From assembly GCA_963924565.1 (NCBI GenBank), contig OZ004608.1:30442001-30506000 (forward strand): a stretch of 64,000 nucleotides of DNA. The letters are read 5' to 3'. The translations under genes and the position numbers were made by a program. Below are positions 16,438-37,094 of the stretch, piece after piece; within the stretch, counting starts at the first letter, position 1, and each line of letters starts with the position of its first letter. The notes beneath the pieces were generated by a model that saw only the letters and a program-made list of their open reading frames with translations, made no database searches and had not been told where the DNA came from. The stretch is from Ascidiella aspersa (Eukaryota).

Positions 16438-17803
16438 GTGTAATGTCACTTTCGCGCGTATGGTTCGAGCCTAAGTTTGACTTTCTTTTGTCCGTCAATT
16501 AGGCCTATGTACGGCATGGTTATTATTATTTTGTTTGTTAAGCTTGGAAAAGTAAGTTGCCTGAAAACGTTATCGCCCAAAAATGTTTCTTCTTCAGGAG
16601 CGTCGTGTTGTTTTTATGTTCGTTGCTTCGCGGTCCCAGGATATTGTCTCGTGGACCCCAGTTTGAGAGCCACTGCCCTAATCTGATATTTTTGAATTGA
16701 AATAAACGTCAAATGTAGTTCAGCTTTACCTTGATCACAAAGAACAAACCAATTGCCGATGAGGAAAAGGCAGATATAAATGTTTGGCCGAGCTGTGACC
16801 TCATTTAATTTGAACTTCTATGTGGTGTTGTATTAATTGGCTTGATACTGGCATTCGGATCTTTATAGTCCAAAGTATTCCGCGTGTTTAACCTTAACAT
16901 TGAGTAAAAATGGTTTGGCACTTTCGCAACAAAGGTGTAATTTTTTATTCTACCTTTCCGATCACATATATAAGAAAATCTACTCTAATAATTAACAGTT
17001 TGCGGCCCTCAGTTTCAAAAATTGGAACTAAACATGCGCGCGTCGGGCTCGGCACTCTTGTAGTCTGTAATCTTACTCGACAGCCCTGGCTTAAAATTTC
17101 CCATGCAGAATTATTTCATGGATGACTTTTATTAACTCATTTGATTAAAAAGGACAATGCAATAAAAGAGCTGCTGCAAAGAAAAAAACGCATTTCATAT
17201 TGGCCTTACTACAAAGTAGTTATGCATAGCGCTGTTAACAAATGCAGTGTCTCCTCGAAAAGCGCATTCAAAACTTAAGATTGCCGGCGGTAATCTCTAC
17301 ATTCTTGTTTGATTACGGTATTTCTCAAGGAATAAAAAGGAATAACAGCAGAAACGAAAAACAGAGAAATTGATTAGGGTGTAAGCCACTCACAATGATC
17401 AGTAATGAAAGGAGAGAGCAGTTGGTTGAATTATTTCACACGAATACACCAAGACAATTGCAAAGAAACGAAGAAAGCGAAAATCTCACAAAAATGAAAT
17501 GGCTAAAATGACGGATTATTTGGCTTCTCAAACTGGGCCATGAAACGGATTTTTACAAGCAATGATTACGGGTCAATAGAACACTAACGTTCTTCTGCCT
17601 TTCGTTATACAAATGTCATAAAACAAATATTGTAAAACAAAATTTAAGATATTAGACCACAATAAAAGTTATGTTTAACTCTTTACTGTCGAAACTGAAG
17701 GGTCGCCGAGATTTTTCAGGAAAAAAATAATCGAAAAGCCCCACAAGATTAGGTGATATATTGGGATTTACACAGGAAAGGATGGCGACCGACCACAACA
17801 GGA

Positions 17804-20800
17804 TTACTTCATCTCTGGCATACCGGCCACCATTGCCCCTTCGATTCCACACTCGTTGTGACCGCGCCTGATCTTGAAGAAGCCCTTGGCACCCCAGTCG
17901 CTGTTCCAGCTGTTGGCCACCAGCCAGTAAGGGGTGTTGTCTTCAGTGCCCCACCCGATGATCTTGACGGCATGCCCGCCCAGCTCACCACCAGTTACGT
18001 GCTGGTAGACGCCTGGAGAATTTAGGAATTTTTTAGGTGCGCCGCGGGACATTGACTTGGATGGGCAATTTACGTTATATAACTGACAAGGAGCTTGATA
18101 AAAATGAAAAAGCCCAAAAAGCGTTTGCGATACGTTTTTGTATCATCAGTTAGTGTTATATTATTCATTTTGGCTTTCAGATTCATTATCAATCTACATT
18201 ACAGATCCGTGCATAGTGTGACTAAATAACTGATAATACTGCGGTATTTATTTAACCATGGCGTTGCCGCGTGGTAAGGGTATTTGTCAAATTATTATTT
18301 TTTTTTTAATTTTAATAAAAGTGTTCCGCTTTATATTTCTTTTTTCACTTGTATGAACGAATCTTTTCTGAAGGATTTTGAAGTCCACAGTCATTCGGCA
18401 AAAGTTAGTAAGTTAAAAAAAATTCCGGCCAAAATTCGACCCGCAAATTTTCGAAGAACCGGCCAAATTCAGTAAAGGCCAAATTAATGACACCCGCTAA
18501 CAAACAAAAACTTTTTTTAAGTGACACAATCCCCATTTACCGGATCTGTAAGTCGGGAAGTCGGCGTAAACGGTGAAAGAGGCTTCGACCGGCCCGTGGT
18601 TCATGATCTCCATCTGGATCTGGGCAACGTCTTCGGGCAGCTCGTACGAGTGCTTGCCTTTGTGCACGTCCTTGGCGAAGTTCATGGTCGTGTTGCCGGT
18701 GCACTTGTCCTTGCACTTTGGCGTCTCACCACCCTCGCTGCATTTTGGGCGAGTGCCTGAATAAACAGGTGCACGTAACAATATTATGTTTGTGATCTTT
18801 AGTGTTGTGAACAAGTCATTCTGAAATGACTCGAGTCTCAGTCAAGTCATAAGTCTCAAACTCCTTAGGAATAAACCAAGACACTTCTTTGTCATTAAAA
18901 TTTGTTAACTCTTCCGATTGTGAGAAATATTAAAACTAAAAAATAACACAAAACGCAACTTATAGAAAGCTTATTGTTTTACATCCACACATTGAGATAA
19001 ATAGTTCAATTTTACAAAAATATGCCTAATAAAAACACTTCATTTAAACCGAAGTTATTTGTCAAAAAGACCTTAATTAAGTTAAGTAAAGTCATTTGTC
19101 CTAAAGACTTAAGTCAAGTCATTTGAAAATAGTGACTTAAGTGCATTGACTTAAGTCATTACAACACTGGTAATCCTAGTCCGGGGCTTAACTGAGGGTC
19201 TCCACCATACAGGAGTTCGCTTGTAGGCACATAAAAATTTCCCGCAAAGTTTGAAAAGACTTTCAGATGTCCATTTATACATGTACTTTTTAACATTTGG
19301 TTTGTAAAAATCAAAAACTAAAATAACACAATTCCATGGTACGCGGGGCGTTGTTTAAAGAAATGTGTCTGGAAGCAGACATCGCAAAAGGTTCTAAAAA
19401 TTTGGGAAATGTTTTAAAAAATTAAGAAAGGTTTTAAAAATTGGAGAAACCCCCGAGTATGTTTGAAAGCGTAATGGCCAACAATAACGGTAGACATATA
19501 ATAACGAAACCGATATCTTTATTATTTGAAAGCTACTGGAACGAAATTACATCTCAGATTTTTATGAAAAACGTTTTGCGAAAAAAATTGTGTTACTCTC
19601 CTGTATGAAACTCATTTTAATTGTAAGCGATATGTTACCGTTGTAAGCATACAAGGACATGGCCTACGCTAAAAAAGTGAATTATAAAGGTGTTTGGATG
19701 GTAAAGCCCAAACTAATTAAGTGAGCTGGCATTTTTGCTTGATAGACACTTTTCCGTTTTGCAAGTGTTGCAAACTCAGAAGACCTTACAAAGCTGCCAG
19801 ACATTTTCGTTGTACTTGCTTAGAATGTAACAAGAACCTACCAAAATAGCATTTTCGTGCTTTGAAAACACGTCGCGATGGCCAAGTGTTTGAAACGCAA
19901 GAAGTAGAAAATCACAGGGAAATGAAAACTGACCATGCAAAAGGAACTAGCTAGAAACTGATGTGGCCTACGTATGTGGTAATTTCTCGTTCCAAATAGG
20001 CTGGAGGCTACAAACCTTTTTGTCTCATGGTAAAACGAAAAACGTGTGTACTTGCGTGACGTTTATTGGCGACCATGTAATAAGTTACCCCCAAACACAT
20101 GATTATTTAAAAGGACCATAAAAGAATTGTTGAATTGGATTTTTAGAAGACATATTGCTTTTACCATTTGAAATTATGTCACCATAAGAATACATTTTTC
20201 TCTATGTTTTGGTACCGCATATTAGGTTACATATTAATATGTGTATATTATGGCGGAGTATCAACTTAGGTTTAAGATATAGAGCAGTGTAAGGCTCTGT
20301 TGCTTGAAGCTTTGTTTTTGGAAGTGGACTAACACGGAATCTTAACACGACGCCAAATCCGCCACGATAATGACGTTTAAGAATCAGGAAACGCACAATA
20401 ATTGGCCCACACAAGTTCTGTGACTGCAAACAAAGCTAAGCAAAGTGTTGTATTTGCGTGTGCCTAATAACCGCACCACGTTTTTACAGTTTTATATTGC
20501 AAAACAAATAAAACGCCTTGCAGGGTGGGTGGAATAGAAAAGCAACATCATCAAAAAACACGGCAGTTTTGGAACAATGCCAGCATGCAGGTGACTATTA
20601 AGGATTAATGGGTTTCGGCAATCGGTCTTGTGACTTAATTTCCTGGAAGTTTTTTTTCCTTATTAAATGCGTTTTTACGATTGGCATCTCTATACACCAA
20701 TACCATTTAAATGCAATAAACTGGGAAGAACAAAAGCAGGATACACACATATTTTCCTAGGTTTATCCGCCAATACAAAGGCACCTATTATGCAGACAAA

Positions 20801-23147
20801 ACTAGTGTTTAACGTCATGTGATGCTAAGTGTTTGTTCAGCTTCAATTGGTACCAGTTGGTGCCATCCTTAGCAAGTGTCTGCAACAATGTGTGCAATGT
20901 TGTACCCTATTGCTAAGTGCTCAATGCAACAAATGCCAACTCTTGTTGTTTTTGTTAAGAGAATGAATAATAAATGGGTCAACGCTTTCCACAACGTTAT
21001 GAAGCTAATGTATTGCAGCTAATTTGCAAGTAGTAAAACATCACAGATAACAATTAGTTGCTTCAACTTCCACAAAAGGCAACCAGGCATAAAATCATTG
21101 TTCCAACTGCATTGTGTTTACTTCCTGCTTATCACTGTAGCTGTTATTTAAAAACAGTATTAGATTGTCTGCCACTCATGTTACGCCAATAAACCTGCTG
21201 AGAGACTCTATGATGTCCGTCTTATTAAACCAGGAAATATTTTTGAATTCTATACAGTAGTGCAATTAAAAGGTACCTTCAACATGGTGTTCACAAGGCG
21301 CAATCGAGTATGGCTGACAGTACTCTGTGTCCTTGTACAAGAAACCAGTTACCAGGCCAGTCTTCAACCAGTACTGCCATGCAGCAGCTGGAAAACCACC
21401 GTTACATCTTAAAAAAAAGATAAATGTTGAGGGTACTTTTTGGATTATGAAACAAAACAAGCTTAGCTTCTTTATAATTCCAACATATCTAGGAGTAAAC
21501 ACATCTAAGATGTAAAACAGCCAATATACTACAAATAACTGCAGGAGGCCAATTAAAAAACAAACATTGGCCTTAATTTGCAGCAAATTACATATAACAG
21601 TCAGGGCCTCAAACCAAAAAATAAAAATGTAGAAGCACAATAGTTATCAGAACAAGTTTTACTACGGCAAAACAACAAAATTAAAAAATGTTTTACCCAT
21701 CTCCACATTCTCTACAGCAGCTAGTCAGATCTTCGGCAGAGATTTCTGTGATAACTGAACCGTTGCTGGCAATGCAAATCCGATCAGAGATGGCTTCAAC
21801 AGCACCAAAGGCCCAGCAAGATCCACATGAGCCCTTCAGGTAAGTTTTGTTTACTAATAGCCAGGCTTCCAGTTTTATTAAGATATATATTATACCAATT
21901 AGGTTTTATTAAAGAAAATATATCTCATAGAAGTGTAACTCTTTAGGATTTTTACTCGCTTTTATTATCTACCTCTCATAATCCACTTTTACCAGAATGA
22001 AATTTACAGTTTATAATACAGTTAATAACAGATGAAATGGCTAAAAAATAACTTGAAAGATATGATGCATACAATTTGAATTGTTTACCTGGTCTCGGAT
22101 GGCCTTAATTGACGGACAATTTGGCCATTTAGTCCTTGAGTCAAATGTCTCTGGTACCTTGCTGGCATCAATTTTGCGGAACCTTGTTGCAACAATTAAA
22201 AAGCATTAAAAGTGTAGAATGTTTTTTGAACTATAAACTATTATAAAGCTATAAGTAAACTTCCGAAGTATGTGGAAAGTATATATGTATGGCTAACAGA
22301 TAATCTTTATTGGCTAAAAAAGTACAAAATATAAGGAAATTTTCAAGGTTTTCAATATTTTATATTTAGCTGTAGTATGCCTTAATTGTTCTTGAAATAC
22401 ACTTATTTCTTTATAATAAAACATACAAATAGCTGTGTATCTAATTAAATAAAACTGTTATATATAATAAATAAAAAAGGATTGCTCAATCCTACATAAG
22501 AGGGAGCCTAGCTTGAGGGTCATCATTCTTCTTCACACCGCACAAGTGTTTCAGAGATTGTGGTGTGTAGTATTCTGGATCGAAGTTGTGGGTTGCCTGA
22601 GAGGGAGCAAAATTAAAATGCTGAATACAGGTATAACCAATTTGTATATTTTGGAAGCATTTTTCTTACTCTACTAAAACAAAGCTTTGTGGTAAATCAT
22701 GAGATTATACATATATACTTGAAATATATGAGTTACATTTCTCCTTTATCACTGGTTAATTGTGTATGAGACTTTATCAGGATTTGGGTGGTGTCAAATT
22801 AGTGTTTTAAAATCATAGGACCCCACTGCATTTCATAACTTATGGTGGCCAAGAAAAAAACAAAATATGAGTAAAAATTTATTATCCACATTGCTCTGTC
22901 CAATTACTAACTAAGATTTCAAACAAATTGCTTCTCAGTTAAGCAATTCCCACATTTCAGACTATTGATGAAAGTTGGTTGAAGAAATAACCAATAGCTT
23001 AACAAACAAGAAATTAGTTACCTTCCAAGTTGTTTTCATAGAATTCACGGTTTCAACAATATCATAGAAGTTCTCTTCTTTTTCAAAGACGACGAGGCCT
23101 CGGACTGCACAAAACAGGCAAAACGCAAGGGCAATGCTAACACGCAT
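17804..23147 (-). CDS. CTSB: Cathepsin B, canonical active copy (337 aa, 7 coding exons)
   Basis: Exons 23147-23022, 22596-22496, 22182-22089, 21833-21697, 21407-21277, 18756-18541 and 18012-17804, all GT-AG (1014 nt). Contains signal peptide, propeptide, [13 protein letters not shown] (Gln, Cys), occluding loop PCEHH, GGHAV (His) and ANSW (Asn). Confidence 0.96.
18800..19169. mobile_element. GACTT-rich hAT MITE family copy in CTSB intron 5
   Basis: Ends are TAGTGTTGTGAAC...TTACAACACTG, with degenerate TSD GTGATCTT/GTAATCCT and AAGTC-rich internal repeats. Confidence 0.8.
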
Positions 23148-24858
23148 TGTGACAACGAAAATGTTTAAAACAAACTAAAATAACTGGTTTCTTCATAGAA
23201 AAACAACACAATTCGAATTAGCTTGTTATAATTTATTAACGGTAAACCAAATGACTATTGCACTGCACAGCGAGGCACAACGCACATACACAGACAAGCG
23301 GAACATAGGCTATGTTAGTGAAGTGTTTCGTAACTACATTTCTTTGTTTACTGCAAGCCTTTTTCTTTAAAAACACGCCATGCATGACTAAGCAGAGTCG
23401 CAGACCTTAACAACAAATGACTTTTGTTCTATGATTTTTCACCACTGTTTTTTCTCAAAGGGTAGTTGATACAAACTAGATTGTAAACGCGCATATTCAT
23501 TACCGAGCAACAGCTGTCGTTACATATCATGCGCCTCTATTTCACTTACGGTACTACTTGCTATTATTTTATGACATTGTTTGTGCTCAACAGACTTTTT
23601 ATCCAAAACAAAAATTTGCCGCTGATTTTCATCATCGTTTTTCAAAGTTTTATTGCAAATAAATTCGAAATTTGTATTTACAATAACACAGAAAGACACA
23701 ATAAAAAACGTATCACTTCAACAAAAGCAGCGAATTCGACTTAAGATTTTTTAATGTTATGATTGTTTGCAAGTTATATCGGTAAATAATATTATCTGTT
23801 TTCGTATCTATTTTATTTTAGTCAATTAGTATATTAAATGATTAAGCATTTTTAACGCTGTTAATCCTATTGTCGAAAAAAGCCTAAATAGTTGTACATT
23901 TGAACAGTGAGCAATGACCAGCAGAATTATCTTACTCCAATTAAAACTGAACAAACTGTCACAGCATTTCAGAGTGCATTGTCAGACTGCGAATTGTAAA
24001 TATGCAAGAACGATTTTTAACAGAAATTTCCTCTACACCCGCGTAACAAACACGTTACAATTACAAAGAGAGATGCTCGCTCGCTATACATAGTAAATAC
24101 AATTATGGCATTTTAAGATTTCAATGCAGTACATGAGAACTGATCTAACACATCACATATCGAAAATTAATCATAACACTGCAACTAGGGATTTCCAATT
24201 AAATAAATTCTTTTTGTCCATTTTCCTCCCCAGTTTATCCCTGGAACAAATTTTCTCCCGTAATTAAAAAAATGATCCCTAAGGAGGCCATGTGGCTCCC
24301 TTTGAGAATCACTGGTCCAGCCAGCACAATTATTGCCTGTTTTTGATAAGACACAGCCGAAGGCACTTCACTGCGCCGCAAACCTGCCATGCGGGCGGGA
24401 ATTACTCGGCCAATAAAGGATTTTATAGCAAACAAGTCTAGCCTAGAAAAGCATAGCATGTCATGTCGTTGTAAGTAAAACCTCGCCTTAACGGGCCCGT
24501 CTCTTTACCAACTGAACTATACGCGGGATCAGGCGGGAGAGCAAGTCGAGGAAGAAGCAGAGCAATTTTGCCTGTTACATCCCGAACAACTTAAAATCCA
24601 ACGACGGTGCATATCAAGTCATCGACGCATTCATGCACAGGTGTTTACAGTTGCCATTCATCCATTTTGTAGAACAAAGAAGACAGCAGTGTTTTTTAAG
24701 GTGAAACGGTCCCCCAAATTTCTCCAGTGGTTTCCCAAATTTTGGACTTGCAACTTTTTGCTATTGAAATGAAACACTTGCGGTATCTTAAAACTACTTA
24801 GCGGTCACCCAAACCAAACCTTAAAAAAAAACCTGAAAGACAGTGTAACAAAGTTTAT

Positions 24859-26239
24859 CCGAAGTCGCATTTCCATCCGCAGCAGGTAAGGATATCCTGT
24901 GCCGACATCTCGGTGACAATCCTGGCCTGGCTGAAGATGCACTGCCGATCGGACATGACTTGCGCCGCCGCGATCGCCCGACTAGCACTGCATGCTACCC
25001 TGTATTACACACAGAGATCGGTGATGCCAATTTAAGTCAATTGCCTATATAGTCCGGCGCAAAACAGTGGTGTTCTGTCCATTGGCGATACACGAATTGA
25101 TAAGCACTGGCATGCTCTTCGTTTTTTTAGATTAAATTGTAGCTCTTCTGTATTGAAATGCGTTGTAGGGCCTATAAAATGAGACAAAATACGAGATACT
25201 ATATACGGCGTAATATCGATAGTTTCTTTGGATACAAGTTGCATTTTGAAGCCCATTAGAAGGCATTTCAAGGATAGTTGGCGAGATGTCACAGACATGC
25301 TTAATTTGAAAGATATACGTTTAAAAATAGCATTTTCACAATAGATAAGTAGGTAGTGTAAAACTTCAATGCATTAATGGTACACTTCCACTACAGCAAT
25401 AGCAAAAACAAACACATTTGTAAAGTGAGGGCCTATGACCACTGTTGACAAGCCCCTACATAAACGTAATTCTGATATTAGCCACTAGTAAATTTTAGTG
25501 TCTAAAGCCTATACCTGATCCATTGTAACACCGATCGAAGGACAATACGGCCAGTGGCCACGGGCATCGAATGCGGTGGGGATTACCCCATGTAGAGATT
25601 CCCTTTCGTTATATCTACACAGATGGGTCAAAGTTCACTCTAGCCTGAAACAACATGACAAAGCACTTTCTGGTAAATGAATTCCGATAAATCGATCCAT
25701 TTATAACTAACTATTGTTTACATAAAGCAGGGGTGTCCAACTTAAACATGCTGACGTGCCAATTTTTATCTTATAACTTCTTCCCGTGCCAAAGTTTAGC
25801 AACTATTTTTTTTCTAATTTTTAAAGGGCTTTTATGCAAAAAATGAAAACAGTATAGTGTTATCAGAAGTAATTGTCTGTGTCGCAATTGTTTTGTATTG
25901 TGAATAAACAATGACAATATGCTGTATAACAAATTTAGCTTTTTTGACAAATGGCTGTATTTTTGGGGGGCTTGCGTGCCATGCTGGACACCCCTGACCT
26001 AAAAGGGTCTCCTATAAACAGAGAGCCGTATAGGCCAAAAGTGTCGTTGGTTTAAAATTGAAATTCTATTTACAAAATGTAACACAAGTATTACCCACAC
26101 TAACCTGCCGAGAGAATTGCCTCGTATTGACGAATTCTATTAATGCATACCAGTCTGACGAGTTACCGATTCTGGATGTCAAGCCTTTATTAAACAACAC
26201 AAGCTCGAGAAAGACTAAGTAGAAAATATTTAACAGCAT
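24859..26239 (-). pseudogene. Truncated cathepsin B-like pseudogene (copy D); exons 1, 3 and 4 recognisable
   Basis: Exon 1 is 26239-26105 (MLLNIFYLVF...LIEFVNTRQFSRQ). Exon 3 is 25614-25515 (IPTAFDARGHWPYCPSIGVTMDQ). Exon 4 is 24999-24859 with a +1 frameshift, CSASRAI in place of CGSCWAF, and a donor mutated GT->AT. Exons 5-7 were not found. Confidence 0.85.
25728..25996. mobile_element. hAT MITE inside cathepsin pseudogene D
   Basis: Ends are CAGGGGTGTCCAAC/GCTGGACACCCCTG, with degenerate TSD ACATAAAG/ACCTAAAA. Confidence 0.8.
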
Positions 26240-26650
26240 GTTCTGCAAATTCACAAAGCATAAGGTAATTCGGGTTATATTTTACAACAGACTTGCGTTA
26301 AACTTTTTTTATATGGTGTCCGTGATGGATTGATACATAATTCACGCTTTGTGGTACGAGAGTGTTCTGCTATCAGCGCGGGATGCTTTTTGCACACGCT
26401 TTTGTCTGAATTAACAAAGCCGTTGGTATAACGTTGCATATTTGTTATTGGGGTCAGCTAGTGATCGTGTACTTTAATTTGGTTTAGTCGCAACAAAGTT
26501 TTACGTGCCTCATTTTCTGACTACAATTAATTTGTTTTATAATTGCATGCTATCCGTATATAGGTTGCATGTGCTTCATATTTATGTAATTTTGGTTACT
26601 TTCTGCTGACAACCAAACCTATAATATTATGAATTAAAACTGTAAAATGG

Positions 26651-29600
26651 TTAATTTAGAAACTCTACAAGTACAGTTCGACCCCAGCCGATGACCTTGA
26701 CCGCGTGACCCCCGACCTCGTTCCCGGTCACGTGATGATAAACACCTGGAAATAAAAACTTTTGAGAGTTAACAGGATCCCGCATTTTGCGACGCCGGTT
26801 GATGTCGCTGTACGATCTATTTCCAGAGTTGCAAACGACTCATATTAAAATATTTGAAGTCCCAGTCAGTTTATTTGTAAAATAACTTAAGTCAAGCCAA
26901 GTCCTTGTCATAACAGTAAACTTTAAAGAACTAAACTTTTAAAGAACCTTAAAGAACTAAAAATTGGTAAACCACAAGTCTGATTACGAGCAATAACTCA
27001 CAGAGAAACTAAATTTAATCAAAACAATATGCTTAATGAAAACATCACATTATTACCGAAGTCAGTTGTCCAAAGACTTAAGTCACATTAAGTCATTTTT
27101 CTGAAACGACTTAAGTCAAGTCAAGTCATTTAAAAACAGTGACTTAAGTAAAGTCACTGACTAACGTTATTAAAACATCGACTATTATCGCTTTCATATG
27201 TCTTTACCAAGGTAACAAATTTAACATCCAGACGCCGTATAACTTTGATTTTTAGCGACATGTGATTTACGTTGAGTTAGACTGGTGGTTCTTAACTCTT
27301 TAGTGACGTTACATTTGAGAACAACTTTAGTGGAAAAAGGTGATTTAAGATCCTGAGAAAGTTTAGTCGTACGGACTGCGCGTCCGTTTCTATTTCGACA
27401 AATGTTTTAAAAGTTTTTTTTAAGCTTAACTTGCTTCTTTTCTTAATATTTTTACCTCCTTTATACGCGAAGAAGTCCGAGTGGACGGTGAACGTGGCTT
27501 CCACCGGGCCGTTCTTGAAGATTTCCATCTGGATGTTGGCCACCCGACTGTCCACCTCGTACGCGTCCAGCGCAAAGTATTTGTCGCTCTTGTAATCAAT
27601 CGACTTATTTCCAAGACACGATCGCGAGCACTCGGGCGTGACGCTTGTGGAGGTCCGATTGCAATCGTGTTTCTTACCTGCTGAAAGGTCGGACTATAGC
27701 AGGGATTCTTAACCAGAGGAACCCCTTGGTGATACGAAGCACCACAACAGGGGGTACGACATAAAGTGTGAAGTTATGCGCTATTTAGGCATATTTGTGA
27801 AGAATGCACATTTTACTAAAAGATACAACAAAAAAGACAATAGTAAATTGACTGTTTGTTTGCGTGTTGTCAATTTTGTTGAATTTACAAAACTGTTTAA
27901 TGCATGCATTCTACTCGTAAGTTATAAATACACTGAGTTTGCTTCCTAATGTTACAATTTTATTTACTTCCTTCGGGCATTGTAGGCAGGGGTACGAGAA
28001 AATTTCATGAAAGCTCAAAGGGTAAAGGGTACGAGCGCTAAAACGGTTAAGAAACACTGGACTATAATATTTGTGCCGGATACAGCATAAATAATGTTCC
28101 ATATACAGAGTGTGGTGGTTGCCCTGGCCTATATAAGCAGATAAGTCACACTTTGTAAATGCTATGACCTGGATAAATTGTATTGGTAAATTACTTGACT
28201 TAAACTCAAGTGAGTATATTTCAGCGTTTTTAAATTTTAAGTAAACAAATTATTTTTGTAAATTACCTGACTTGGACTCAAGTGCGTATTTATAAATGAC
28301 ATTAGTGAATAAATTATTTTGGTAAATTAGGTATTCGTTTTAGACTTAAGTGTGTATTCATTTCTATTTTTAAATAACCTCGGTGAACTAATAAATTTGG
28401 AAAATTACGTGATTTTTTAACATGAGTAAATAGATTTTCTTAAGATGATTAGTTGAATTTACTTATACTCGATTAAAAAAATTAAAATTATGAAAATTGG
28501 CCAAATTTTGTTAAGTGTAATTTGGAAAGCATGCATTAGAAATAATTTGACTCGATAACCGATTTTGGTAACCATTTTGCTATATTGATGCATTGGTAGC
28601 CTAAGTTAGTTGGTTTTCATTTTGCAAAAAGTATATGTATACTGGCTTAAGGGTTATAAACTTTTAAATTGCATTGCGAACCATATGAAAGGAAAATAAT
28701 GATGATGCCTTTGTAATTTAACATAAAAGATTGCGGTGGGATTTGATGTCAGGTCTGCACCTCTCTTCAGCTTGTGGTGTTCACAAACTTTGTAGAATGG
28801 AGAATAGCAGGTTAAAATTCAGATTGGAGGCCTTTGGAGTCAATGTGAAAAATCTAGCTCACCATTGCTGGCATGGTGACACGGCGAAATGGAATACGGT
28901 TGGCAGTATTTATGGCGTCCGTAACCCTGTCCGGTTACAATTCCGTTGTACTGAAATGGAGTCTAAATACAGTCAGTGCAAACCGTTTGCTTTCTTTGAA
29001 AAAATGATTATTTTTTAAATATACACTAATATTCATGGACCCCAGTTTAAGGACCCCTAATCTATATGCTTTCAATACCAACCTACCGCTAATCGGTTTG
29101 GGAGCTTAATGCATCTGTTCCGTAAAACTCTACAATCTGAATAGACAACGCACCCAAATCCACACTCTTCGCCGCAACAGGACAGAAGATCTTGGGCGGA
29201 CAGCTGCGTTGTGATTCTTCCCTCGCTGAAAATGCACAGACGGTCGGTCATCGCTTGCACGGCGCTGATCGCCCAACTTGAGGAGCACCAGCCCTGATAG
29301 GTAAAGTTGACAGACAATTCATCAAAATTGACTGGGCTGGATTATAGGATAAAACTCGCCTTGGATCCAATTTGTACAGCAAATAGTACTGAAGCCAACG
29401 AATGACCTTGATATATTTTCAGAGAATGACACTGAATGTAGCTGACAAACCGAAATAATAACAGCTATAGAGTTTCCACTTTAGGTTATTTAAAATTTCT
29501 ACTTTTATTTAAATTTGCTTTAGTCGTTTTCAAACATATCAATATTTGCTTTTTCGAGTGCCATGCACTACAGCTTTTTTTAATTTGGTAAATGATCGCC

Positions 29601-30526
29601 CATCTGCGTCAATATAGCATCGATAAGGTTTGTTAAATTTTAAATAAAATTAATTGATCAACCAGCCCACCAGGATTTAGTTTACGGTTTACATTTATTT
29701 CTCATATGTTGCTTTTTAAAACGTACAAAAATATTGATGTCGATCTTTTCGAGTAAACTTTAGTAAATTTGAATATGACTTACCTGATCTTGAATTGAAA
29801 CGAGCGATGGGCAGTTGATCCAGTGTTCTCTTCCGTCGAAAAGCAACGGCATGCCTTTCAAGTTATTATGCAACCTGCATTCCGTAAACTAAAAAGTTCA
29901 AGTTTGACAAAACAAGTTAAAACAATGAACTGATTTAGTTTTAGTAAAGTGGCTGTAGTATTGTTAAAATAAGACGATTAAAATCATTGAAGCAAACAGT
30001 TAGGTTGTATTAAACTGTTATAGAGCATATATATCTGACTATTTTGACTTTTTTATGTAGCCTACAAAACAATTTTCCAGTTGTTAAACAATTTTGAATG
30101 TAAAGTGTACCGTGTTGCTGAAAAACATTTTGCTTTAATTTTTCATTTATTTTATTAGGCTGAATAACAGTTAGCTTACATTTTAGGCGCACGCTGTACT
30201 TTTGACTTGTTTGCCCCACAGAGTTTTTTCAAGTCGTGGGGTCTGTACAGGTCTGGATCAAAGTTGTGTCCCGCCTAAAATCAAAAGTTAAATTTAAACA
30301 TTGCTGGTTAGCATATAACTTCCTTCGTACAACTTTTTGCTGCTTGACAATCTTGCCATAAGGCTTTTAAAACATACGAAAGATGTGTTATCTGTGTACT
30401 TACCGTCCACGTTGTGTTGAGACTGTTAACATACTCCACGATATCATGGAAGTTTTCTTGTGATATAGTTGATGCACTCGACTTTAAAACTCCAACAGCA
30501 ATGAGCAAAGGCAAACAAATGAACGT
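26651..30526 (-). pseudogene. Cathepsin B-like pseudogene (copy B) with Cys->Ser nucleophile
   Basis: Exons 30526-30404 (ACG where the ATG is expected), 30274-30180, 29874-29784, 29293-29154 (QGWCSSSWAISA), ~28953-28863 (the 5' CxGGxPxxAW part is missing), 27677-27456 and 26745-26651. Homology stops after GGHAVKVIGWG and there is no ANSW. Confidence 0.88.
27700..28059. mobile_element. hAT MITE inserted about 20 nt from the exon 6 acceptor of pseudogene B
   Basis: TIRs CAGGGATTCTTAACC/GGTTAAGAAACACTG, with TSD GACTATAG/GACTATAA. Confidence 0.88.
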
Positions 30527-31303
30527 CGGAACTTTTGCCGAACTGCTCTTGTATAGTTTTAAAACAGCGTTTTTGGCCAGCCTTACCCCGATAACACAGC
30601 AACGTTTACAGTCAGGGGAGTGTCTACACTTTGATTGTACCTCAAAAAACAACTAGTCGAATGAAGGCTACATCATTATTGCTCCAGGCTACTCAGTCCA
30701 CTGATGCAACACTTTAAGTGGAAATTTGACGTACCTTTTAACACTGACATGTGAAAACCTTTAGCAGTTGGCGCTTCACAGGTCTTACCAAAAATTAAAA
30801 AACAACTTTTAGAAGCAGTATAGCCTATAGTTTATATGTCTAACTGAGCACTTGTTTCGCCGTAGTCCTTACATTTAGCTGTTTTCTTCCAGCTTGTAAA
30901 TCTAATTACCCTTTTTGGAACAGTTCAGCAACATGTTTAACCGGATGAAGCAAAGTTGAGCGAAAACCTTGTCATTATTTTAACACAATTTTTTGTGAAA
31001 GAGTGTCGCCTGATTCCCTATTTTTTGGTAATATCGGTTGCATTATTGTGTAAACTAGTGCGACGTTAATCTCTGATATAAAAGGAACTTACAAATTCGT
31101 TCGTCTGTGGCACACAAAGTGGAAATTGAACAAAACAAAAGCACAAAACTGCAAAACGTGTAAGCTCGTAACAAAGTTTTATTGGCATCAGATGAAATAT
31201 TAAAACAATTTTGCATCAAAAATACGATTGCATTGTGTTATACATTGCACACCACGAAGATGGAAGTGTAAAAAGAAAACTAGAAACAACTTTATCACTC
31301 AGA

Positions 31304-34300
31304 TTAAAGGATGCTATTCTCCACGATTTCACCAAGAGGCGTCTTCTTTCGTTTCTCCTCCTCCCAACTGCGTTTCATTAAATCATCGTCGATCCTTGGT
31401 CTTCCGGCAATCACAGAGGACTCGATGCCACACTCATTCACCTCCCGGAGAATCTTAAAGAATCCCTTCTCCCCCCAGTCGCTGTTCCAGGAGTTGGCCA
31501 CCGTCCAGTAGCGGATGTTCTGTTCTTCTCCCCAGCCGACGATCCGGACCGAGTGGATGCCGAGAAATTTTCCAGCAACGTGCTGGTACACTCCTGAAAA
31601 ATAAAACTGTTTAAGACCCGACAACTGTATAGCCTACATCTCAATAATGCGAGCAGTGACGATTTTAGGTTTGAAGTCACGCTGACAAACACTCCAAAAC
31701 TAGAAGATCATCTTGTATTCGCTATTCGGTTTATAAGTTTTCAGTTTTCGGTGTCTACAACATTTATTCGTCGACTTGTTCTTCTGTATTTACAATATAA
31801 GCTTTTCTTTATTTTTTAACTAGGCGTAATAACTAATCTACAGCATTTGATCTTTTTTCTTTGGCTGCTTTTTCTTGAAGACAATTCTCGAAATATAATT
31901 TCCGATTCTTACCAATGTCCCCGGGTCCGTTTTGAACTGACTTTACCCGATGAAACATTACAATGCCGTTGCCATTACCGATTTACTGTACTTCATGAAT
32001 ATATCGTAACGGCAATAACAAGCAACAACGAACAAACTAAAAGTTAACCATTCGTTGAAGACGCCCATTGAGGCACATATACTCCAATCTTTGACCGGCG
32101 CGATTTAAATCTCGACCTCCAGATGGTATAATGGCCTATGGAATAACTTCTTTAAATCTGATTTCATAGTGATATCAATTGAAAGGTGTCTGATACGCCT
32201 ATAAACAGTTTTTTTGAAAAAAAGTAGGAATAAACAACTCACAGAAGTAGCCTACATGAGGGGTAAAACTTCCCGAAACTAGAACACCAGGTTGTATTAG
32301 GTATATTGAAATCAGTAAGACACCAAGGATTCCTAAAAAGCCAGGAAGTAAGACATTTTTTTAATTGCTTACCGACTTTGTAGGTTAGAAAATCGGCGTA
32401 GACCTTCATGGTGGCTTGCACCGGACCGTTGATGAACATCTCCATCTGGATTTGGGCCACGTCGCTGCTTACTTTGTACGTGTCAACGCCGAAGTACTTG
32501 TCCTGCTCGTACACCAAAGACTTGTTTCCCTGGCAGGTTCCGCTGCACTGCGGAGTTTCGTTGGTTTCGTTGCAAAGCGGCCTGGGCCCTACACGGAAAT
32601 CAATGTGTAATATATGACTTACTTTTGAAGTCCAATACAAATTTATTGATTTTCGGCTAATCCGGTTGGTGAGAGAATCTTTAAATATAGTTGACATGAC
32701 AAATTTTAGCTGCATTCTAAATTAAACAAGCGTTAGGTTTTAAAAATTATAATCGCGGTTAGTGTTTTCCTAAAGGTGTATTGGAATTATTTATTTATTT
32801 CAATTGGATAAAAAAGTGCCAAATGACATAAAATCATTAATCGTACATATTACATTTTTAGACAGCCCAATTTAAAATTATTTTTGTTTAGAATTTAAGG
32901 TATTTTCTTTTTAATGTTATTTGATGGTCACCAAACACAATTTGGACTGTTTGACTAAATAACCAAATAATGGCAAATTAATTTATTAACTTGACTTATG
33001 TCCACTTGATTAACTGCTTTGAAATAACTTAGGTCTTTTTGGTAAAATTAATTGACTTAAGTCTTTTGACCAAATAAATTGGGTTAAATTAAGTGTTTTT
33101 TTCCTTTTTTGTGATTTGAATTAGACTGGGACTTGACTTGGACTTAAGGTATTTAAAAATGAGTTGTTTACAATGCTGGAATTTTATCGCAAAACCACTG
33201 AGATAAAAGCGCCAAGCTGGATAAAATATAGGTATAGACTACCTGAGCCGTTATGACTGCAGGGTGGAAACGCGTAGGGCTGACAGTATTTCTTGTCATT
33301 GTAGCTAGATCCGCTCACAATGCCGGTCCACTGCCAATAGTTCCACGCTGCAAGCGGGTAACCACCTCGACATCTAAATGTATTAAATAAAACAATAAAT
33401 ATTTTAAATTTTTGTAGAGAAACTTTTTTCAGTGGAAGATAAATCCCCTATTTTTGCGTTATTTTAACCCCTATTTTTGCGTTATTTTAGTGTACATCGT
33501 GTCAAATAACGCTGATTTTAAGAAATTAAGCGAAAGAGATGACTTAAAAACAAGGGTCATTGAAAGACAGATATAACAATGGGTTTAAACTTTGTTACCT
33601 TTATTATTATTAAACTATAAAGACGATTTTTTTCACAAAATATGGGGTAAATCGTGAAAATATAATCGTTTTGTAAAACACGTTCTTAAAATTTAGTCTA
33701 CATTTCCATCCCAAAAACACGTCGCTCATTAAACTACCATTAACAGTTTTTAATTCAATAAGAGAATATGTCGCTCGGGGTCCGTATAGTTGATTGAACC
33801 CTGCAAGGGTAGTAAAAGGCTTATATACATATTTTATTTTCATGAGTAAAAAAATGCACGAAACAACAAATGTGAAAATTTTTTAACACAAACTTTTTTT
33901 CTGCAAGCTCCTACCCTTGACCGCATCTCCATCCGCAACAAGATAGCAGGTCTTCGGCGGAGAGCTGGGTGACGACCCGGCCTTGACTGAAAATGCAGAT
34001 CCGGTCACTCATTGTGTGCGCTGCGCCCACGGCCCAGTCCGAGCCACAGGAACCCTTCAATAGAAGATATTTTGGACCTAAGGCTTCAACTGCAATATGT
34101 TTTTTACTCTAAAAGGCATAGGATCGATATTAATAGGTTTTTGCCTAAAACAATGTTTTGTATACATTGTATAGAAATTTTCGTTCACGATTAACTGGAC
34201 AAGACTTCTTTAACAGCGCACATGCATCGCATGCACTATAGCTTTCGTTTTTACCATTGACGGTTTTAAATGCATTGTATGCATCACTGCACAGATGTTA

Positions 34301-35648
34301 TTCGTATGGTTTAACAAATTAATCGATTTAAAATCACAGGTGGTAAAACTACTTCGTTCAGATATATAACCAGACCGATACTTTATATCTTATTCGGATA
34401 GCGATGTTTGACATTGCGGGAAGAGATTATGGCGTTCTAATCTTATAACAAATGACGTCATTACTGTGATCAAACAGGCACAATTAATTAAGTTCGACCG
34501 TGAAAAGGAATGTTGCCAGGCTAAAATTTATTTTAGATGGAAGACGCTAAGTTGCATTTACATGGCGTTTTGCTATTTTTCGATCAAAGAGTGCCGCGTT
34601 GTATTGCAAACTATCGACTGAAATGCCCTTTTTTGGTATTGGACAGAACCGATATTACCCTATAGTAACGGACAAGTACTTGACATCGGGTATCCCGTAC
34701 AATATACGATACTATCAGACATACCTTCTATGTGGGCTCGGTTTTACTACTCAAGCTAGCTGGCTGTTAAAAAATGGATCGAAGATACCATAATAGTTAT
34801 CTTGTTTCAGTAAAACCACTTCGTTAAAGTCTTACCTGGTCGCTCACTTGTTTGATTGTCGGGCAAAACGGCCAATGCCCACCCGATTGAAAGAGAAACG
34901 GGATTTTGATCTTGAACTGGCGGTATCTAAGCACAAATGCATTTCCTTAAATTGTTGTCTAACAAGTTGGAGAAGAAATATATCATTCTCTTTTCTTACA
35001 TCGTCGGTATTATTTCTTCATTGTTTGGATTATTCTTTTGAAGCGTCCCGCATAGATACGATAGATCATCAGGGACGTACTGCTCCGGATTAAAGTTATG
35101 GCCTGCCTTCAGATAATAAAAAAACGTTAATTACGTTCCTTTACTTTATCTCCTATAAATTGATATGCAGAGTATATGCCTTTATTGCTTCTTAGATAAA
35201 AAAATGAAAAATTGATTGTACGAACTTATACAATCACAACTAAACATTACGAAAAGTCTCATACTAAAACGGAAGCTGTTGTTTTTCTTTAAAACTAACA
35301 AAACAACCCTAATCGTGACACGTTTTGCATGAAGCAGACTTTTAGCAACTTGTAGGGCTGTAAGCCAGGCATTGCTGACCTGCCGAATCGCATTTTTTTA
35401 TTTTTCATGACTTTGCTGTGTGATGTCACATCCGCATAAGCACAATCAACCCCTAAGTTAATCCATTTACTTGGTCAGTGCCTGAAATTATCCGCGGCGT
35501 TCAAAATGATCAAACTTCGAACAAAGCTTACCTTCCATGTAGTATTGACGCCGTTCACGTCGTTGATTAATTCCTGAAAGGCGTTGATACTTCCTGCTGA
35601 TATCTGACTGGCGACGCATATAAAAACAATAAATCCGATCAACCACAT
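31304..35648 (-). CDS. Intact cathepsin B-like protein (copy C, 363 aa) with catalytic Cys replaced by Asp; probable pseudopeptidase
   Basis: Exons 35648-35532, 35106-35000, 34926-34836, 34054-33915, 33373-33243, 32588-32373 and 31593-31304, all GT-AG and in frame (1092 nt). Motifs are [12 protein letters not shown] (GAC at 34039-34037), occluding loop PCSHN, GIHSV and ANSW, plus a C-terminal extension. Confidence 0.9.
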
Positions 35649-37094
35649 TGTGCAATTTCGTAACAGTCCTAAGCAACCCACTAGCGTTTCGTTATGTCAA
35701 CTGACTTTCCATTGAATGGAAACGTTTATAATAGTTCCTCGCCTTTTGTAAGATCAAAGCACAGTGAAAGTTTATCGAATAGGTTTTAAACCAAAACCAA
35801 AGCCACCCATCAACAATCAATCAATGCTCTTTCATTATCACGCCCCGGGGCAGGCTGCGAACGACTGGTTTTGGACTGTCATTTGTGTACATTAACCGCA
35901 AACGAACGGTTTTACAGCAAAACACGTGCTACATTTATCTGATTTAAGTTAGCAAAAATAGTAATTTAAATATGGACGTTATACTATCGGTGTTAAGGAA
36001 AATATTGGCAAAAAATGGCAGAAGCAGCGATTAAATTGGCAAAATATCTATGAAGTAATGCTATGTTGTCTGTGGGTAAAAATATTGAGGCCTAAAACCT
36101 ACAGATATTTATTTCTGATTACTGTCTGTTCTTTTTTCTTAAAATCAGTATGCCCTACTATATAATCAACTATTGACTGATAATATTGAATCGCAAAGAG
36201 TAGGAGAAGGCTTTGCAATTCACTATCAAGCTAAATTGCAGATCCGTGTATAGTGTACCCAACTGTAAACTGCCTAATCGAAAAGCTTTGGTTTTGTTCG
36301 ATTTTGCGCACTGTCGCCAGAATAGTCTGTCAAAACTACAGATATGAAACACGCTTACATTGCTGCACGATTGAAAGTCCAAAACAACAGTTTTTTCCGC
36401 CGCAGCTTCCGATTATGTGACAAACGCAGGCGTATGACTTAGCCCAGTCTAGGGTATGCTGTGATTAGCACGCCCACGTCGCCCAGTCAACGCAATGTTG
36501 GGTCTCATATCAAGTGACGCATTTCACCCCATGTTTACCGACACGTGTCGATTTTTGCTGGCAACGTACAGAACAAAATATTACATGCAAATGCGCATTT
36601 GCAATTACAAGTTCATAACATTGGACAGCGTTGTAACGACTTGTCAATGACTTGACTTAACTGTACTTAAACCACTGTTTATAAATGACTCCACTTGAAT
36701 TAAGTCGTTTTTTTGTAAACTGACTTGACTGACATACTCTGGACAAACGACTTGACTTGGACCTAGCTGATAAATAAAAATTTTAATTGAATTTATTCAT
36801 CATTTGATTATAAACAAGGTGTATTTTCAAGTTTTTTTACGTCAAATGATTACATTGTAACATGTTAGTTTTTTGTCATGTTTAAGTTGAATATTATTGC
36901 TCGTTAAAATCGGACGAGTTTACTTGTTTTAAAAGACTTGACTTGGTTATCACTTTGCATTGGGTTCCGAATCGGATATCGCTAGAAAACATGGCCACAA
37001 CCGATTTTGGGTGTATAACACATGTTCGTGCAAGAATAGCGCACGAGTCGCGGGTATTTCAAATGTTTTTTATTCCTTGGACACATATACAAAC

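Follow-up and report, generated by a model that had tools for sequence, protein, structure and literature searches.

Results

Organization of the array

The stretch analysed here, called the window throughout, comprises 64,000 nucleotides of contig OZ004608.1 (positions 30,442,001 to 30,506,000; G000:C2:30442001-30506000) in the 308.6 Mb assembly of the tunicate Ascidiella aspersa. It carries a tandem array of four cathepsin B-type copies, all on the minus strand and arranged in the order C (35.6-31.3 kb), B (30.5-26.65 kb), D (25.6-24.86 kb) and A (23.15-17.8 kb). Gene A is a canonical cathepsin B. Copy C is an intact gene with aspartate in place of the nucleophile cysteine, and copies B and D are pseudogenes with serine at that position. 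The copies were located by a six-frame motif scan combined with tblastn of the local open frames. A genome search with an exon 4 peptide profile gave four matches among six candidates; these four are all of the cathepsin B-type nucleophile exons in the assembly, and all lie within the window. A genome search with exon 6 of C returned A, B and C only (three of three matches). An Rfam search of positions 17000-37000 gave no matches.

Exons of all four copies match the Peptidase_C1 family (PF00112): exons 4, 6 and 7 of A, exons 4 and 7 of C, exon 4 of B and, weakly at 18.3 bits, exon 4 of D. Exon 6 of C scored 20.1 bits against a cut-off of 20.7, and its exon 5 scored 18.3. Exons 1 and 2 of A, B and C align with the propeptide family PF08127 at profile positions 3-17 and 18-39, respectively; these halves score 15-20 bits each, unjoined, below the Pfam cut-off of 32.7 bits. 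Solved structures point the same way as the family matches. Exon 6 of C hits 22 PDB sequences, of which 20 bear the name cathepsin B or cathepsin B-like, one is called "pro cathepsin B S9" and one "cysteine protease". For exon 4 of C, the best 15 PDB hits are cathepsin B or procathepsin B; over the two exons, the minority of hits with other names are further C1 cysteine peptidases. The exon 4 alignments cover residues 24-68 of the mature chain in cathepsin B entries such as 1cte_A and place the aspartate at Cys29.

Gene A occupies 17804..23147 in seven coding exons (23147-23022, 22596-22496, 22182-22089, 21833-21697, 21407-21277, 18756-18541 and 18012-17804). It has a leader, GT/AG introns, the nucleophile motif CGSCW with a TGC cysteine codon at 21818-21816, the occluding-loop motif CEHHV, and the GGHAV and ANSWN motifs. 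Of the 86 columns shared by at least nine of 11 canonical outgroup proteins, A keeps 83.

Copy C is intact and encodes aspartate at the nucleophile position

Copy C lies at 31304..35648, with exons at 35648-35532, 35106-35000, 34926-34836, 34054-33915, 33373-33243, 32588-32373 and 31593-31304. Its introns agree with those of A in both protein position and phase, all 12 splice sites are GT/AG, and its reading frame stays open for about 363 codons without a stop. The protein begins with a hydrophobic leader that reads as a signal peptide, continues with a probable propeptide, and ends in a charged C-terminal extension of about 30 amino acids.

In C the nucleophile residue is encoded by GAC (Asp; 34037..34039, motif CGSDW), as both the codon reading and the PDB alignment show. 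The rest of the catalytic apparatus is still there: C keeps the oxyanion Gln (SDQ|G), the His (GIHSV) and the Asn (ANSWN), and it retains every cysteine visible in the exon translations and alignments. The occluding loop reads CSHNG in C versus CEHHV in A, so that one of the two aligned histidines (His110-His111) is kept. In total C keeps 76 of the 86 conserved columns. Since Cys29 is replaced by Asp in C and by Ser in B and D, the three copies are to be classed as non-peptidase homologues and not as active members of the cathepsin B family.

Errors in the assembly or in sequencing could in principle mimic such substitutions. No observation was found that favours this explanation, and each copy differs from A at roughly half of its residues, which single-base error does not explain. 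In addition, a 9062-base contig from DNA run X1 matches positions 29101-35100 with no differences and no alternative letters; this is weak as independent support, as run X1 may be the source of the assembly itself. We regard error as having a negligible chance of being correct. In run X1, the segment 33062-33170 within intron 5 of C rises from a contig depth of 65 to 120-370 and is surrounded by many short contigs, joints and loose ends. It is probably a dispersed repeat or a small transposon.

Copies B and D are decayed

Copy B (26651..30535) survives as exon remnants at ?-30404, 30274-30180, 29874-29784, 29293-29154, (28950)-28863, 27680-27456 and 26745-26651, and bears three lesions. First, no in-frame ATG reads into the exon 1 donor. 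Thirteen ATGs occur between 31300 and 30404; those in the exon 1 frame each meet a stop first, and two reach the end of the exon in another frame. Second, the first third of exon 5, which should encode the conserved CxGG...W helix region, is not convincingly similar to either A or C and includes a TAG, and no AG acceptor fits the inherited phase. A rescue can be drawn on paper by using a weak GTTGTC donor, which extends exon 4 to 29150, together with a CAG acceptor before 28950, at the price of about 14 residues. Third, similarity in exon 7 breaks off immediately past GWG, with a stop nine codons further on. The rest of exon 7, about 45 residues including the catalytic Asn, was not found in the window, and a genome search with exon 7 did not place it beside B (the match there covers residues 1-23 only). 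B thus retains the Gln and the His and lacks the Asn region; its occluding-loop motif is CHHAS. The nucleophile codon is AGT (Ser) at 29276..29278, in the motif CSSSW.

The 239 surviving codons of B are free of stops. Under simulated neutral evolution, the probability that a frame of this length stays open was 0.25 at 0.05 substitutions per site and fell to 0.07 at 0.1 and to 0.005 at 0.2. B therefore lost its function recently relative to its age.

Copy D (24859..25614) is a pseudogene fragment made up of exon 3 (25614-25515) and exon 4 (24999-24859). One extra base after the first two codons of exon 4 puts the CSASR frame out of register with its own acceptor and with exon 3, and no in-frame AG acceptor was found for this exon. 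The exon 4 donor has changed from GT to AT, and the Trp that follows the nucleophile position has become Arg. The nucleophile codon is AGT (Ser) at 24981..24983, and of the Gln, His and Asn only the Gln is retained. No remnants of exons 1, 2, 5, 6 or 7 were detected in the window at E<1. For the 80 codons of D the neutral simulation gave P=0.46 at 0.1 substitutions per site, which makes it a weak test.

About 1 kb (26650-25615) separates the truncated exon 7 of B from exon 3 of D. A single deletion running from the middle of B exon 7 into the first two exons of D could explain both truncations.

The copies are old and were long constrained

Nei-Gojobori counts were made per exon and summed for the six pairs of copies. 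The proportion of synonymous differences (pS) is 0.71-0.90 and that of nonsynonymous differences (pN) 0.31-0.40 in all of them. Because pS is saturated in every pair, the duplications are old and dN/dS cannot be computed per branch. Because pN is well below pS, every copy, B and D included, was mostly under purifying selection in the past. Amino-acid identities are A-C 0.51, A-B 0.47, B-C 0.48, B-D 0.53, C-D 0.50 and A-D 0.40.

Trees and residue counts, rooted against 11 canonical database proteins that we chose as outgroups, favour a clade of B, C and D that excludes A, as had been proposed from the letters of the array. The summed per-exon maximum likelihood scores (log-likelihood, lnL) are -7937.55 for B+C, -7966.09 for A+C and -7966.67 for A+B. 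Shared derived residues number 14 for B and C, eight for A and C, five for A and B, and ten for all three. D is placed with B/C at lnL -2186.36 and with A at -2213.56. Within the clade, B+D leads the other orders by only about 2 lnL units.

The short motifs named in the original prediction fit this grouping in part. CIFS(Q/E) is common to B, C and D, and A has CIAS. CCG is also common to the three, with CCR in A, but it occurs in some canonical outgroups as well (such as database entry P0044) and is thus probably an ancestral feature and not a derived one.

One nucleophile loss or two

The nucleophile residues reported earlier for all four copies, and the codon coordinates reported for B, C and D, proved exact. 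B and D do carry the same AGT codon by codon reading, with the caveat that neither is an intact gene and that the frame of D is shifted. The claim built on these codons, that the nucleophile was lost before the duplications, is not established. GAC and AGT share no base at any codon position, which is compatible both with one early loss and with two separate losses.

The second of these would mean that selection relaxed after duplication and that Ser arose on the line to B and D and Asp on the line to C, without any single ancestral dead gene. B and D share, besides the Ser, a change from Gly to Ser two residues earlier, and C has neither. Independent loss of the cysteine is also common: of the 30 listed database relatives whose nucleophile region was located, seven have Ser, Gly or Asp in its place, and they belong to a sea spider, schistosomes and a beetle. 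On the other hand, should the three copies form a clade, a single loss with a later change of residue is equally parsimonious in protein-level events, and the order within the clade is not settled by the small lead of B+D. We consider a double loss a serious possibility that falls short of an even chance.

Discussion

The explanation to which we give slightly better than even odds is that the window holds an old tandem array in which B, C and D represent a side lineage without the thiol, long held under constraint, with C as its sole survivor and acting as a binder that does not cleave. Gene A would be the working lysosomal protease. The side lineage would have lost its thiol nucleophile and passed through a long period of purifying selection, and two of its members are now dead: B, recently disabled through loss of its start codon, of the 5′ part of exon 5 and of a 3′ end that included the catalytic Asn, and D, a wreck of two exons. 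The birth-and-death evolution suggested for this array is borne out by that decay. Half of the idea of a dead subfamily also stands, in that the copies group together, were constrained for a long time and are dying out. To call the subfamily expanded was an overstatement, as only one of the three copies without the cysteine is intact, namely C, and expression of C is unproven.

If C is expressed, its product is most likely a secreted or lysosomal protein that resembles a proenzyme, has the cathepsin B fold and would be unable to form the thioester intermediate. The Asp29 carboxylate and the remaining His are likely to form a pair that imitates the thiolate-imidazolium pair and preserves the shape of the cleft. 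The propeptide would be removed in trans by A or by another protease. The processed protein may then bind substrates or cystatin-type inhibitors without cleaving them, as has been shown for the inactive schistosome protein TrCB1.6. A bolder version, in which C is the last survivor of an old tunicate line of thiol-less cathepsin B proteins selected for a non-proteolytic function, with an Asp-His pair replacing the thiolate-imidazolium pair in a protein that traps substrates or cystatins or else performs a new carboxylate-based hydrolysis, strikes us as improbable.

Several results weigh against this explanation. The first concerns the protein itself, as its ten losses at conserved columns include the change from GGHA to GIHS adjoining the catalytic His. 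The second concerns expression. About 6% of one RNA run labelled as the same species (tissue not stated) was read and mapped to positions 29101-35100; gene A lies outside this region, so the run provides no control. Only 11 reads fell on the region. Mean depth was about 1 in the bin that contains C exon 6, and 0 over exons 1-4 of B and over the other C exons covered. These data neither show nor exclude expression of C.

The third concerns the trees. Forcing A, B and C together gives lnL -7956.41 versus -7937.55 when they are left free, a cost of about 19 units, and the trees alone therefore do not show that B and C arose from A within this lineage. The B+C grouping itself could be an artefact of long-branch attraction, given the short exons and the long branches of B and C.

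The fourth is the lack of close relatives. An exhaustive HMMER search of the protein collections with C exon 6 gave 450 matches at E≤1e-3, and the 150 listed contained no close relative: the best show 46-53% identity and come from a sea spider, a beetle, nematodes and schistosomes. A word search with the C exon 4 open reading frame (ORF) returned no candidate. With the exon 7 ORF, 95 of 96 candidates reached E≤1e-5; their coverage of the query was 74% at most and thus stopped short of the C-terminal extension. These absences say little, because the collections apparently lack this species and its close kin and because the length window of 0.55-1.75x drops full-length proteins when single exons are the queries.

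A rival explanation is that C, too, is a pseudogene, the youngest casualty of the array, which has not yet acquired a stop or a frameshift. The near-zero RNA reads on C in the one run would fit such a fate, as would the decay of both neighbours from the same clade, the excess of changes at conserved columns (ten of 86, against three of 86 in A) and the failure to find an orthologue in the protein collections. Yet the roughly 363 codons of C are open, all 12 of its splice sites are canonical, and its Gln, His, Asn and cysteines are kept. Since even 239 neutral codons stay open with a probability of only 0.07 at 0.1 substitutions per site, C would have to have been freed from selection only very recently. 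We judge this explanation unlikely, though it is a genuine contender.

The RNA run also shows a signal inside intron 3 of C. Depth reaches about 3 at 34501-34700, the only such bin, and the first mates there point the opposite way from those on C exon 6. The segment is single-copy in the genome except at its left edge, where about 46 bases are repeated. The signal may come from a small plus-strand transcript.

A further alternative, raised in the original prediction as altered chemistry, is that C is still a hydrolase, in which the Asp-His pair activates a water molecule or the Asp serves as a carboxylate nucleophile. The oxyanion Gln, the His and the Asn are all retained around the Asp, and an aspartate would preserve the negative charge of the thiolate. 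However, a literature search, as far as its sources were available in part, turned up no papain-fold enzyme with an Asp nucleophile, and the schistosome proteins with Asp at this position (P0123 and P0152) have lost the His as well. The absence of the His from those Asp-bearing proteins suggests that Asp is tolerated as a filler of a dead site. We think catalysis of this kind very improbable.

Our preferred explanation, a non-cleaving C in an old and shrinking lineage, involves no new kind of biology. Cathepsin B paralogues without activity have precedents (TINAG, schistosome TrCB1.6 and examples in insects), and the change from Cys to Asp is present in public schistosome sequences. Dead cysteine-cathepsin paralogues recur across animals, and few of them have a demonstrated role. 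An intact chordate copy with an Asp-His pair, lying beside its active parent and two freshly decayed sisters, would be a tidy system in which to ask what maintains such a protein and how it is lost. On this particular case, the partly available literature on tunicate or ascidian cathepsin B paralogues and on Asp-substituted papain-like proteins yielded nothing.

Comparison with known systems

TINAG and TINAGL1 are vertebrate matricellular proteins with a cathepsin B-type domain in which the nucleophile Cys is replaced by Ser, and they carry an extra cysteine-rich region N-terminal to that domain. Silicatein has the same replacement on a cathepsin L-type backbone. Both had been invoked for the copies described here, and both turn out to be analogies and not families to which the copies belong: B and C retain a leader and a probable propeptide like those of cathepsin B and are of the B type, not the L type. 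The likeness to TINAG consists of the Ser at the nucleophile position in B and D, and a TINAG-like database protein, P0102, shows CAASW there; it ranks only 102nd among the 150 listed matches to C exon 6. The differences are that exons 1 and 2 of B and C encode the leader and two probable halves of the cathepsin B propeptide with no extra N-terminal domain, that the copies stand in tandem with cathepsin B, and that the sole intact copy, C, has Asp instead of Ser. As for silicatein, the best solved relatives of the present copies are all cathepsin B, and the occluding-loop exon is present.

A TINAG gene elsewhere in the genome was also considered. Exon 7 has matches on other chromosomes; in a search that was not exhaustive, two such places were examined and neither was shown to be TINAG-like. 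One (L005/L007, at G000:C4:27926000-27941000) is a cathepsin C-like gene with an intact GSCGSCY nucleophile motif. The other (L006) matches C1 peptidases more weakly.

Among the 150 listed relatives of C exon 6, the nucleophile region was found in 30, and seven of these have no Cys. Ser occurs in P0002 (Nymphon), P0102 and P0103, Gly in P0076 (a beetle) and P0110, and Asp in P0020 and P0123 (Schistosoma); the Asp cluster has an S. mansoni member as well (P0152). The Schistosoma proteins with the motif CRADW (P0020 from S. bovis, P0123 from S. rodhaini and P0152 from S. mansoni) share with C the same change from Cys to Asp. Unlike C, they no longer have the catalytic His (the motif reads GWINL, not GGHAV) and carry E at the position of the oxyanion Gln, and their identity to C exon 6 is about 40%. 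Their Asp is clearly of independent origin.

Expansions of cathepsin B specific to beetle lineages (Tenebrio/Tribolium) include members predicted to be inactive because of active-site substitutions, according to the available part of the source (PMC4336737). Those are digestive families of the gut, and the same part of that source notes no case with Asp (PMC4336737).

The closest parallels are TrCB1.5 and TrCB1.6. In the portion of the source available, TrCB1.6 of Trichobilharzia regenti is described as inactive, with Cys29Gly and the occluding-loop change His110Asn; it is processed in trans by active isoforms or by asparaginyl endopeptidase, and it can form a complex with chicken cystatin (PMC7054455). 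The resemblance to C is extensive as far as that portion goes, because in both systems a cathepsin B paralogue stands beside active isoforms, Cys29 is replaced, one occluding-loop His has become Asn, the propeptide is kept so that trans processing would be required, and the rest of the cleft is preserved (PMC7054455). The two systems differ in the replacing residue, which is Gly there and Asp (C) or Ser (B and D) here (PMC7054455, same portion). They differ also in the organism, a parasite versus a free-living chordate. Finally, by the same partial account the TrCB proteins are highly expressed and bind cystatin experimentally, whereas the copies in Ascidiella aspersa are known from their genes alone (PMC7054455).

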